64,000 nucleotides of DNA, taken from positions 1,364,968 through 1,428,967 of the forward strand of contig CAJFCJ010000009.1 of the NCBI GenBank assembly GCA_904063045.1. The letters are read 5' to 3'. The notes under the pieces are model-generated. The model was not told where the DNA came from and did not search any database. It was given only the letters and a program-made list of their open reading frames with translations. Below, one piece after another: positions 8,519 through 13,361 of the stretch (its first letter is position 1; each line of letters begins with the position of its first letter). The position numbers were made by a program, and so were the translations under genes. Source of the DNA: Dimorphilus gyrociliatus (Eukaryota > Animalia > Annelida).

Positions 8519-8987
8519 GGCGGATGATATAATAAAAAAGTTACATTTACTTATGCATTTTATCGCTTTCTTATCAGTATCTTAACGTGTTCGGTAATTT
8601 TTTAAAGGTATTTAGATAAGATATAGTTTCATATTTTGTTTCCATGTGAAAACATTACACATCATGCGCATGACACAGGCCTAATGAGGCTATTTTCAAT
8701 TTAATGCCTTAGGGCACCATCGAGAAGAATCGGCTGTTTTAAAATTTCCTTTGATCTCAAATAGGCATTTTACAACCTTAATAATAGTTTTTCACCTCTA
8801 TAAGAATTTTATACTACTACTCATAATTTTCTAACTCATTTTTAATTAAAAATTTTTAAAGATAAAAACTTTCGCCGTAGTTTTTTAAGACGTAAATTCT
8901 ATTTTATTCAAGCGATTGTTGTTGAATTTTTTTTCACAAGATTCACAATGAGAAATGAAAAAGTTTATAGACTACTAGTGTCAATAT

Positions 8988-11900
8988 TCACCACTTGAAT
9001 TTGAAGTCCATTTTTATTAGGTACTTCATCCTTACTTGAGAAACATCGTAGACAATGTATTCGTTATATAATAAACTGGTTCTTTCTCCTTTTGAATTTG
9101 TACCTTTTCCTAGAGGAATTTCTACTCCGTCTCCTGTAATAATCTTATCCTCTGGATTTGGAACGGTCATCCCCTTTCCTTTTGTACTATGTTTGCCCTT
9201 AGGTAAATTAGTAACGTATTCGGCTGCCTTACATTCATACATATTACCGAGAGCTACTTCGCATAACAGCAACAAGCCCGTAGGCTCTGCTTTAGACGTT
9301 CGACAGTAGTTAGCAGATTTTGATACCATGTCAGCGAAATAGATACCCTTTCCAAACATATAACCGGTAACTGGCGCCTCTGGTGGAGCTATACGTAGAC
9401 CTTGGGAAAGTATACCAGCAAAGTTAGTGGTCCTTGAACCATGCCATAAAAGTTGACGATTGTGCAGATCTTTGAATGGTTTATATCTTTTATCTTCCCC
9501 GTGTTTATCTATTTTAAGTACATCTATAACTTCCAATTGATATTGGTTGTGTGTAGCAGCGTGGGTATTACGAACGTAATCGACAATTTGCTTAAATTCT
9601 AAAGATTCCTTGTTCAAAACTTCCATATCCGTTTTGAGAGATTGATAATGAACATCAATGGGGTCACTTTCACTACCCTTTCCTCCTTTCAATAGGCTGT
9701 AAGCGACTTCAATATCTAGTAAATTGGTCAACATGTCATTTTTTGACTTGATAATATCTACCGTATTTAGTACAGTAGGTTTTCTTAAACCGAAATCATG
9801 TGGAATTAGTGTATAAAACCTGTTCGACGCGTCCAAGTATTGTGTAGGACTTCCGCCAGTGTCTATTAAATGTTGAAGCTCGTTAAGTACTTTATAAGCA
9901 TCTTCGATCTGTTTCTTAGATAACTTTCCAAGCGGCATTTTCTTTAGATCAATTTCAAATTCGAGCATAGCCTTCTTCATACTTTCCACATCGAAAATTA
10001 GGCGTATAATGTCTTGAATTTCTTTCGCCAATTTCGAATTACTTTTCCCAGATAGATCAACTTCAATATCTTCATCTTCGGCGCCGTAGTCAATTTCAAT
10101 AGGATAAAATTTTCGCGGTTTCTTCTGAAAATCTTTTCTCTCTGACCATTCATTTCCGGTTTTCTCGTAATAAACTGTAGTAAAGTTGTCAATTGCTCTG
10201 TCCTTTGATCGAAATTCATCTAATTTATTACCGCCTATTGTTGTTCCAACACGACCCCAGGCTCTAAAAACCCAAAATAATTTCCCTTTATCAGATTCTA
10301 ATATTTGAAGTTTATAGTAAGAGTTGGTCCCTTTTTGAATGTCAACCATATTTAAAACAACATTGTAAGGCTCCCCCTTATCTTGTAGAAGATGAGCGGT
10401 ATCTTCGAGTCCTGAATCGGGATCTACAGCTGCTCCTCCTTTCACTTTCATTTTTGTCTTTTCAGCCCCAGAGAACATTTTCTCATCCTTCTCTCTCTGT
10501 TTCTCCATAATTGACTTTCTAATTTTGGGTTTCTGTATTCTTTGCTTTGGCTAAAAATGCATCATGTACTTGTTAAATAAACGCAAAATGTAACTTTAAA
10601 TGTATAAATAAACAAACAAAATCACTGAAACGTAATAAACTTACATCATCTCCCCAATCGCAAAGTTTATGCTTGTCAATCAAAGAAACAGGGTCGACTT
10701 TCATAGCCTCTTCTAAGAAATCCTCTTTAACAACTTGTATATTATTCTTTTTAGCTTCTTTAATAACCTTTAAATTTTTCTTTACTTCGGCCTCATTGCT
10801 AAAGACTGCAAATGTTTTTTCGTCCACTGCAGTTGCAACTGTACCACCCAGATCTTTAATTTCTTTAGTCAATTCGGCTTTGGATTTTGTAGTTTTTCCA
10901 ATAACGAAAGTCATTCCCTTAAGTGGTAATTCAACATTTGCATCAGTTCCTGCGTTGACAGCCGTTTTAGGAGCAGGTGGAAACACTCTTGTCCGCTTCT
11001 TATACTTGTACTTAGCCCTAAAAATCGTCAACGAAAATATTGAATGTAAAAATTGCCAACAACCTTTGGGAATGAAAATTTGTGAAAGCAAAGCTACACA
11101 GTGAAAGGTAAAGGTGAAATGAAAAGATTCAAGATCATAGCACTCACAAACAATCGGCGTCTAAATACTCCTCAGGGATTTTAAAAGGTTTTCTTTCAGG
11201 CGTAACCGTAGTATAACTACAGGCAGTAAAGCCTGAAAAGTTTCCAGTGCATCGGTAACAACTTTTCCCAGTACTGTAATATATTTTGAAAAACGAAAGA
11301 AAATCATAGTGTAAAGTGAAAGTGATTAAGAAAGTAAAAGAAAGAGTAAAATAGATTAAAGACAGATTGAGCTTTTGCCTTAGGGAATCACGACAGTCAA
11401 GGATCGCTGCTTGCAAGCGTTCACTCACAAATATTCAACATCGTGATAATCCTCTGGTATTTCAAATTTATCCCGCTCGGGTTCAGAAGTTCTATACTGA
11501 CACTTCGTCCAAGCAGAAATATTACCACGGCATGAATAACCGTATTTACTAATTTGGGCGAGAAACTCGTCATCTTACGTCTTCAATTTGTTTATAATAA
11601 ACATGGTATATAGATATTTAAACAAACATACCTGTGTACCAATTGACCTTCTTTACATTCAGGACACTTTTTCAACAACCCAAATGCCATACAATCAGTA
11701 ACTCTGTCTAATAAATTATCGTTCCCTGATGGAACGTCCTGATTATTGTATTCCAAAAGGCCTTTTAAAGCGTTATTCGAAACTTCATTCGACAATTTAT
11801 CCCTTATGGCCCACAACATCTCAGATTGCTCTCTTAATTTCTTTTCCTCGGGCTTTTCCTCTTTTTCTTTCTCTTTCTTAACTTTTTTAGGTTTTGTCGC

Positions 11901-12828
11901 TTCAGTGCCGCCGGTTGCTTTTCGTTTTCTATTTACGAAATTACGCAATTCAACATTGACCAGATAAATAAACATTCGTGTTTATACATACACGCCTTTG
12001 CCTAATTTCTCGATTAGCGTTTCCTTATCCTCTTTTGCTAATTGCTTGTAACCGGGTATCCTTTCAAAGGTATAAATGTTTTAATAAGTTATGTAATCGG
12101 GTTGAAAATTAATTGTTGAATTCTAAATATAAGAAAACACTAACTGATCTGGCTGCATCTCAGTTGAAAATCCAAGATCATCCCGATTTTCAACAAAGCA
12201 ATCTTGATGATACCACATATTCTGAGGTCCGTACATTCTAGCTCTTTGCGATTCAAAGTCCTTCTTAGCCAATCTAACTTCCTGCTTTGGAATTTTGCTG
12301 TCACATCCCCTACAGACACTCGCTCCGGACTTAGCATAGTCAATCAGAAAATCTTTGTAATTCGTTTCGCCACTATAAGCACCATCTTCACCATCTGCTG
12401 AACCTATTGAACAATCACCTGTTAAAAATTACTTTACAAGCCATATGACCTAACCTGACACTTTGTCTTTAATCTTTTTCTGATCGTCCCATCTGAGGGC
12501 ATCGAAATTATGAATTTGATTCACAGAAAGTAACCCTCTAACTCGTTCCCAAAAACAGTTATAATGATACCAGTTAGGCGTCTAAAATGAGTTGGCATTT
12601 ATAAATATTATTACTATGTTCATTAAAAATACCTTTCCGTCAAAATGGGGACTCTGAAAGGGCATAAAAATAATTAGTTGAACATTTTTGATGAAAAATC
12701 AACAGTCCAACCTGAACCATTATAGCTAATCTTAAACTGTCTTTTCCTATGTTTTTGAAGCATTTTTTGCAACTAGCGCGATTGCTTTTTGCGTATTCCG
12801 CTTTGAACGGATATTCACTGTCTCCCAT
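8988..12828 (-). CDS. PARP1: Poly(ADP-ribose) polymerase 1
   Basis: Exons 12828-12712, 12653-12633 (21 nt, SPHFDGK), 12581-12455, 12418-12145, 12060-11992, 11928-11632, [11548-11429 or 11273-11148], 11017-10645, 10550-8988. Contains Zn1 ([13 protein letters not shown]...WYHYNC), Zn2 ([13 protein letters not shown]...WYHQDC), Zn3, BRCT, WGR (RAWGRVG), helical domain and catalytic H-Y-E triad (WHGS, GIYFAD, YNEYIVY). Confidence 0.98.
11148..11273 (-). other. PARP1: PARP1 Zn3 second-half exon, copy B (variant, Trp->Phe)
   Basis: 126 nt, phase 2-2, ttacag|T...TT|gtgagtg. Encodes (S)[41 protein letters not shown](L); 19/37 aligned residues identical to copy A. Confidence 0.85.
11429..11548 (-). 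other. PARP1: PARP1 Zn3 second-half exon, copy A (canonical, Trp-containing)
   Basis: 120 nt, phase 2-2, aattag|T...TT|gtgagtg. Encodes (S)[39 protein letters not shown](L). Confidence 0.92.
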
Positions 12829-13361
12829 ATCGAAATAAAGAAAAGATTGTTTTGTGAGTAGTATTTATATATTACAAATATTTTCGAAACACCATGGGCA
12901 AGTTGGAAATCGCGCAAACAAGCAAAGAGTGGTTACGAAAGGAAAATTGCCCATTCAACCGAAAAATAGGCGCGGAAGCCCCAACCAAACAACTTTTTTT
13001 GCAAAATTTATTTTTGTCTAAAATAATTTTCTTTTTAATTTAATATTATTGTTTACATAGTTTATCAATATTTAAATTTAAAAAATTTATCTTTTTTATC
13101 AATAAACAAATATTATCCTGTGAAAAAAAAACTTGCATTGTAGACACAGTATTGTTTAGCATATTGTAATGGCGGCTCATGCAAACTAACGTCTTAGACT
13201 TTCAAAGTTTCCTCAGAGAATACAGCTGCCCTTACCATATTTTTTACATATAAATTATTAGAAATATTTCGAAATTGTGTTCAAGTAAGTGTACTATAAA
13301 ATAGTTATGAATTTTTCTGGAAATCAACTATTAACTTGCAGACCATCCAGTTAAGTCCGAA

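Follow-up and report, generated by a model that had tools for sequence, protein, structure and literature searches.

A tandemly duplicated exon pair providing alternative second halves of the Zn3 ribbon in the PARP1 gene of an annelid

Tandem-duplicated mutually exclusive exons (MXEs) are a well-described class (PMC3228551, PMC5740500, PMC9741552, PMC9013439) for which prediction criteria have been published (PMC3228551) and events have been surveyed (PMC9741552, PMC5740500). We analysed a 64,000-nt stretch of DNA from Dimorphilus gyrociliatus (contig CAJFCJ010000009.1, positions 1,364,968 to 1,428,967; hereafter the window, in whose coordinates all positions are given) that contains a complete PARP1 gene on its minus strand. 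Two homologous exons of this gene, designated A and B, are situated between the exon encoding the first cysteine pair of the third zinc finger (Zn3) and the exon encoding the BRCT domain. The best explanation for our results, and one that we consider highly probable, is that a lineage-restricted tandem duplication produced a mutually exclusive pair of PARP1 exons specifying two Zn3 isoforms. As in known MXE clusters, e.g. exons 5a and 5b of human SCN-alpha, the two exons are adjacent and homologous, near-equal in length and identical in phase, with one used per transcript; the two isoforms are abundant, purifying selection appears to act on each copy and a flanking intron is conserved. Unlike known clusters, the PARP1 pair looks lineage-restricted rather than ancient, and none of the four textbook mechanisms of exclusivity could be assigned to it. 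The pair is a new case of this class, its splicing being confirmed at the level of RNA contigs. Full-text literature searches identified no mutually exclusive or tandem-duplicated exon pair in PARP1, in agreement with an earlier note on this DNA, made by a model from the sequence alone, which knew of no such description. Similarly, a survey of human events contains no mention of PARP (PMC9741552).

The segment encoded by exons A and B corresponds to part of the Zn3 domain of human PARP1 (2jvn, 2riq, 4dqy), which has one version of the segment compared with two versions here. Artificial mutants, W318R among them, have been the main means of studying PARP1 allostery (zinc-finger binding to breaks, unfolding of the helical domain and inhibitor feedback on DNA retention). 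In the human protein a loop of this segment lies at the interface of Zn3, WGR and the catalytic domain (CAT), and this interface relays DNA-break binding to unfolding of the helical domain (HD). The W318R substitution in this loop breaks the contact between Zn3, WGR and CAT, and allosteric activation is lost although DNA binding is unimpaired; the mutant protein still compacts on DNA, but its HD fails entirely to unfold and no poly(ADP-ribose) is made (PMC5175350). The role in DNA-break-dependent activation that the earlier note had given for W318 is therefore correct. While human W318R is artificial and disabling, the Phe residue specified by exon B is natural and conservative, and it is accompanied by about 20 other substitutions.

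Exons A and B and their use in transcripts

The gene is colinear with an oyster-type PARP1 of 988 aa (P0001). Pfam searches with single exons yielded, in order, zf-PARP (twice), PADR1_N, Zn_ribbon_PADR1, BRCT, WGR, PARP_reg and PARP; thus, the locus has the Zn1-Zn2-Zn3(PADR1)-BRCT-WGR-HD-CAT domain order of PARP1. Coding sequences assembled with the RNA-defined introns specify proteins of 981 aa with exon A and 983 aa with exon B. The two proteins differ solely in a segment of ~41 residues, in which 22 aligned positions are changed and B is 2 residues longer. Identity between A and B is 19/37 over the core residues and 19/41 aa over the whole exon. In both exons, the first base after the AG acceptor is the last of a Ser codon, and the final two bases belong to a Leu codon. 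Exon A is preceded by ...AAATTAG and followed by GTGAGTGA, exon B is preceded by ...ATTACAG and followed by GTGAGTGC, and the two 3' ends are alike (...TTT/GTGAGTG, where the slash marks the splice site). The end of the upstream exon at 11632 is directly followed by GTATGT. A and B are thus adjacent, homologous, similar in length (120 vs 126 nt) and of the same phase, as is characteristic of tandem-duplicated exons.

Each exon alone matched the Zn_ribbon_PADR1 family at profile positions 17/19-42 of 42, with scores of 38.3 bits for A and 31.6 bits for B (gathering cutoff, 25.1 bits). As each exon passed this threshold by itself, with the upstream exon supplying positions 2-14, we conclude that a single zinc ribbon has its second half available in two versions, A and B. 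The four Zn3 zinc ligands are complete, with CPEC provided by the upstream exon and C-x9-C by A and by B. Human PARP1 Zn3 chains in the PDB (2riq, 2jvn, 4dqy group) were matched at residues ~309-345 by both exons (E = 4e-6 for A and 1e-3 for B), and the two cysteines of each exon align with human C311 and C321. Exon A retains the human AWTKC sequence exactly, while exon B specifies Phe at W318, Ala at K320 and Gly at A317. Exon B also contains extra cysteines: one lies near its start and is confined to the window, and another belongs to the conserved tail DADCL. The earlier note had described two homologous exons at these positions, with these translations, 19/37 identity, common donors, both zinc-ligand cysteines and the three loop changes in copy B; all of these observations hold.

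Assembled contigs from four sequencing runs were placed on positions 8900-12900, and two of the runs (X8 and X3) revealed the paths through A and B. The kind of library is unrecorded for X8, although in practice it is RNA, as every intron is missing from its contigs, which match the window at 100% identity. One X8 contig covered the downstream exons (8900-10550 joined to 10645-11017; depth 1022), and another covered the upstream exon (11632-11928) together with four exons further upstream (depth 721). Between these flanking contigs were two short contigs, i.e. an assembly bubble with two paths. Contig 15 (depth 364) contained the entire exon A between 28 nt of upstream-exon and 26 nt of downstream-exon sequence, and contig 14 (depth 422) had the same arrangement with the entire exon B. 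The depths of A and B add up to 785, which is roughly the depth of the flanks. Run X3 comes from a different organism, with ~8% nucleotide differences (~92% identical). In this case A was joined to the upstream exon at a depth of 110 and B at a depth of 58, and both paths continued into the same 26 nt, which is that organism's version of the start of the downstream exon. Exon B accounted for 54% of the transcripts in X8 and 35% in X3. All of the joints in the contigs carry GT..AG ends. Low-depth unspliced fragments (X1 contig 4 and X3 contig 10) represent pre-mRNA or DNA carry-over.

The four joints that the earlier note had predicted (11632 to 11548, 11632 to 11273, 11429 to 11017 and 11148 to 11017) were all present in RNA contigs, whereas neither the A-to-B joint (11429 to 11273), which it had expected to be absent, nor a joint skipping both exons (11632 to 11017) was listed in the X8 or X3 contigs. 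As the A contig continues into the downstream exon, and the B contig begins in the upstream exon, with no branch in either case, any A-B junction must be too rare to survive assembly. With two organisms joining the upstream exon to either A or B and then to the BRCT exon at comparable depth, the mutually exclusive use that the note had proposed is supported, and B is in use, contrary to what would be expected of a dead duplicate. From these data we conclude that mature transcripts carry exactly one of the two exons at the contig level, with any rare forms lying below the sensitivity of contigs.

Conservation and origin of the pair

Searching with the terminal exon gave P0210 as the closest protein match (89% identity); this is the product of the terminal exon of L001, a 35-kb genomic Logan contig from a more distant relative that aligns with the window over the whole exon cluster. 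L001 contains an exon A' of 120 nt and an exon B' of 126 nt with the same boundaries and both zinc-ligand cysteines. The isoform-specific residues are also retained: A' has the loop GNISAWT and the tail EDYHDVEFL, and B' has the loop GNFSGFT and the tail EEYLDADCL. Comparison of the window with L001 by the Nei-Gojobori method yielded dN/dS values of 0.21 for A and 0.09 for B, for one species pair and few sites, with synonymous sites of exon B near saturation (pS 0.64). These values, including the one for exon B that the earlier note had proposed as a check, support the conclusion that both copies are kept by purifying selection. Identities for individual exons and introns are given in Table 1. 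Intron 3 is conserved far better than the neighbouring exons, and two near-invariant stretches are found there, one of which extends into exon B. Such stretches are the usual signature of regulated alternative exons, and both are probably binding sites for splicing regulators.

The exon pair is not a general feature of spiralians, in whose PARP1 loci the earlier note had proposed to search for it. The PARP1 loci of a brachiopod (Lingula anatina), an oyster (Crassostrea virginica) and another annelid (Capitella teleta) contain a single copy of the exon with the same boundaries and nothing else similar in the gene. Moreover, two tandem copies of the exon were found in none of 325 fetched PARP proteins. 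The exon B peptide, used by itself as a query against the protein database, gave no match, the short bubble contigs evidently not being part of that collection, and the species' own full-length PARP1 was not among the matches seeded with P0001. When C-terminal halves were placed in a tree, those of the window and L001 grouped as a separate branch among the lophotrochozoan sequences; the nearest named proteins, from molluscs, a brachiopod and annelids, are only 64-69% identical. These comparisons make the duplication look lineage-restricted. Its presence in both genomes indicates that it predates the split between the window and L001, which amounts, for these exons, to 0.66 or more synonymous substitutions per site. 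A tree of the 41-residue exon has relevant supports of 13-51 and gives no date for the duplication. Exon B occupies a long branch in this tree and is the more diverged copy relative to the single-copy orthologues. In the alignment of exon peptides the ancestral parts are split between the copies, with A having kept W-T-K-C and the EYHDVE[FY]L tail, and B having kept C-T-G-N and RK-FKIPEEY. The loop of A (SAWTKC) is thus the ancestral one, whereas the residues that follow it in A have changed.

About 20 PARP fragments of ~640-660 aa were considered as instances of the same break point in other taxa and were rejected, as they are genomic open reading frames of an unrelated group. These fragments (within P0257-P0324; metagenome and Logan contigs) all begin at one exon boundary (...SYKSKVKKR), and the region from BRCT to CAT is a single exon in them. 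Duplicates of the whole PARP1 gene, as opposed to the exon-level duplicate described here, were observed elsewhere: Lingula anatina has two on different contigs and Ptychodera flava has two on one contig (P0171/P0174, P0191/P0193).

Control of the splice choice and possible consequences of the swap

Several ways in which exclusivity might be enforced were examined at the locus. Enforcement by reading frame and nonsense-mediated decay is excluded, as 120 and 126 are both multiples of 3. Incompatibility between U2 and U12 splice sites is also excluded; each of the three introns has GT-AG ends and a GTRAGT donor, with no 5' splice site of the U12 type. Steric exclusion is unlikely because intron 2 is 155 nt long while the same gene splices introns of 51 nt; however, the ~95-nt AG-free, pyrimidine-rich stretch in intron 2 allows a distant branch point.

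Competing RNA structures, as described for Dscam and 14-3-3 xi (PMC6071210, PMC9013439), resemble the PARP1 arrangement in that a motif is repeated after each variant exon and a complementary site is present in the upstream exon. The motif ATTCCCWAAGG occurs downstream of both A (ATTCCCTAAGG) and B (ATTCCCAAAGG), and the upstream exon contains CCTTTTGGAAT within a 29-nt run that is identical in L001; all three sites are conserved in that contig. However, the position of CCTTTTGGAAT is non-canonical for a docking site. Unlike in the Dscam and 14-3-3 xi model, the selectors lie downstream of the PARP1 variants and the putative docking site lies upstream, such that pairing would loop out the exon itself. 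Furthermore, the PARP1 motifs are without covariation, and the 651-nt pre-mRNA region folded no better than shuffled sequences (z = -0.2). The same was true of the conserved block at 11098-11187, which had no stable structure relative to shuffles (z = +0.5 and -0.7). RNAduplex returned only loose, uninformative duplexes between segments, the stems that pair in both species were limited to invariant, wobble-rich candidates without covariation, and Rfam contained no known RNA family matching the introns or conserved blocks. Three further candidates were rejected. Inverted repeats pairing the donor region of A with 11073-11085 in intron 3, and 11643-11660 in the upstream exon with 11042-11059 in intron 3, were not clearly maintained in L001, and a hairpin between the 3' part of exon A and the intron 2 motif (z = -1.8) had one compensatory and one disruptive change in that contig. 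The splice choice is probably set by the conserved intronic elements.

Several points weigh against the reading of A and B as a mutually exclusive pair of differently tuned isoforms. The RNA evidence consists of assembler contigs (k about 31), not reads, for which depth is assembler word depth, and it comes from two data sets without tissue or condition labels. The junction flanks of 26-28 nt are slightly below the 31-nt rule of thumb, and contigs lose rare variants, so low-level inclusion or skipping of both exons may exist. Transcripts with both exons (1023 aa) or neither (941 aa) would also be in frame, nothing obvious forbids either, and no enforcing mechanism was found among those sought at the locus (frame, U12, steric, RNA pairing). 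The dN/dS estimates cover about 120 nt per exon from one species pair. Lastly, the Trp-to-Phe change is conservative; the W318 position is aromatic in 166 of 167 PARP1-type proteins (Trp in 145, Tyr in 13 and Phe in 8), with Phe or Tyr being the natural residue in 21 of the 167. The in-frame alternatives, the lack of an enforcing mechanism and the loss of rare forms from contigs would all be compatible with splicing that is not strictly exclusive, i.e. two independently regulated cassette exons with low levels of the double-inclusion or skip-both forms. We regard this explanation as rather unlikely, since the A and B contigs of X8 and X3 are unbranched, leaving an A-B junction too rare for assembly, and A and B together reach about the depth of the flanks. 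It is also the case that a de Bruijn bubble by itself cannot separate paralogues from isoforms, and the two RNA paths could in principle derive from two gene copies or haplotypes instead of alternative splicing of one gene. This is extremely improbable given that A and B are in tandem within one locus in both the window and L001, that each flank is covered by one contig, at 100% identity to the window, and that each path has exact exon boundaries with GT-AG ends. The greater divergence of B from the single-copy orthologues might suggest a decaying duplicate that is spliced by accident to give a noise isoform. Such decay is very improbable, as B makes up roughly a third (X3) or slightly more than half (X8) of the transcripts, its length, frame, zinc cysteines and splice sites are kept in L001 with a low dN/dS at near-saturated synonymous sites, and its 3' end together with the following intron is the best-conserved DNA in the region.

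Both exons specify the latter half of the Zn3 (PADR1) ribbon, which corresponds roughly to human residues 306-345 and takes in C311, C321 and the W318 loop. If A and B are indeed a mutually exclusive pair derived from a lineage-restricted duplication, every mature mRNA would carry one or the other to give two full-length PARP1 isoforms. As the loop lies at the Zn3-WGR-CAT interface, the isoforms probably differ in the coupling of DNA binding to activation or in another Zn3-dependent contact; allosteric coupling is the property most likely affected by the swap. The Phe of B is accompanied by Gly in place of Ala/Glu at 317, Ala or Ser in place of Lys at 320, and about 19 further changes. This Phe is best viewed as a conservative, naturally occurring state, not a knock-out, and our reading is that both isoforms would be functional PARP1s whose Zn3 interfaces are tuned differently. 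Since Trp gives way to Phe or Tyr in 21 of the 167 homologues, the suggestion of the earlier note that the isoforms could differ in activation threshold or in chromatin binding is put more cautiously here. We tentatively suggest a natural allosteric switch, which we consider possible but somewhat doubtful, in which the Trp loop of A would couple break binding tightly to activation, the Phe/Gly/Ala loop of B would bind but activate weakly or with other kinetics, and regulated splicing, acting through the conserved elements of the introns, would determine the ratio of A to B. B might then be a low-output, long-dwelling or chromatin-architectural PARP1, and PARP1 output would be subject to control at the level of splicing. 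Alternatively, the swap may be real but tune another Zn3 property, such as chromatin compaction, a partner contact, zinc-site stability or redox sensitivity. This alternative is quite plausible, if short of even, as the differences are spread over the whole segment beyond the W318 loop, each tail (EDYHDVE[YF]L in A, EEYLDADCL in B) is retained in both species, the Trp-to-Phe change alone is mild, and B has extra cysteines. Arguing for the loop instead are its isoform-specific conservation in both species (GNISAWT vs GNFSGFT) and its standing as the best-documented functional site of the segment.

Two selected and co-expressed natural variants of this interface segment, on an otherwise identical protein, provide a ready comparison for the residues that govern coupling strength. 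With introns of 83, 155 and 130 nt, the locus is also a clean and small example of exon exclusivity for which frame, U12 sites or any evident steric constraint do not account, and it contains about 130 nt of near-invariant intronic sequence. The reach of both points is limited by the restriction of the pair to one invertebrate lineage, and the functional meaning is predicted from sequence.

Gene features and minor observations

The coordinates of the features are collected in Table 1.

Table 1. Features of the PARP1 locus in the window and their identity to the relative's contig L001
Feature	Position	Strand	Identity to L001	Evidence or remarks
PARP1 coding region, whole	8988..12828	-		Introns set by spliced X8 contigs; open from ATG at 12828 to stop at 8988 in both isoforms
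Upstream constitutive exon: PADR1_N helices and first half of Zn3 ribbon (CPEC, zinc ligands 1-2)	11632..11928	-	84%	PADR1_N 81 bits; Zn_ribbon_PADR1 positions 2-14; joints 11632 to 11548 and 11632 to 11273
CCTTTTGGAAT in upstream exon	11750..11760	-		10/11 complementary to ATTCCCAAAGG; candidate pairing partner, unproven
Intron 1, 83 nt, GT-AG	11549..11631	-	69%	Spliced contigs
Exon A, 120 nt: second half of Zn3 ribbon, loop GNISAWTKC, tail EDYHDVEYL	11429..11548	-	83%	Translation, Pfam, RNA joints to 11632 and 11017
Intron 2 (A to B), 155 nt, GT-AG	11274..11428	-	69%	Central conserved block, then ~95 nt AG-free and pyrimidine-rich up to the B acceptor
Motif ATTCCCTAAGG, downstream of exon A	11378..11388	-		One change in L001
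Exon B, 126 nt: second half of Zn3 ribbon, loop GNFSGFTAC, tail EEYLDADCL	11148..11273	-	77%	Translation, Pfam, RNA joints to 11632 and 11017
Near-invariant block: last ~40 nt of exon B and first 50 nt of intron 3	11098..11187	-		One mismatch in about 90 nt vs L001
Intron 3, 130 nt, GT-AG	11018..11147	-	89%	Introns 1 and 2, 69% each
Second conserved intronic block, 43 nt, holding ATTCCCAAAGG	11034..11076	-		L001 alignment; one mismatch
Motif ATTCCCAAAGG, intron 3	11063..11073	-		Within the 43-nt conserved block
Downstream constitutive exon: linker and BRCT	10645..11017	-	75%	BRCT 43.6 bits; joints from 11017 to 11148 and 11429
Terminal coding exon, 1563 nt: WGR, helical (PARP_reg) and catalytic domains	8988..10550	-		Pfam; joint 10550-10645

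Very short introns characterize this gene (51, 51, 58, 63, 83, 84, 94, 130 and 155 nt), the exceptions being the 358- and 411-nt skips across an unused alternative exon. A micro-exon of 21 nt is present at 12633-12653 on the minus strand, within the first PARP zinc finger; the introns on its two sides measure 58 and 51 nt, and spliced contigs containing it were found in X8, X1 and X3. Run X1, a coral metatranscriptome, also contained an unspliced fragment (11057-11194) that crosses intron 3 and exon B and has remnants of sequencing adapters at both ends, indicating that Dimorphilus or a very close relative was present in the coral-associated sample. Downstream of PARP1 in the relative's contig (L001:11927-18441), the called genes are an unannotated gene followed by bZIP, PBD-domain and protein-kinase genes.

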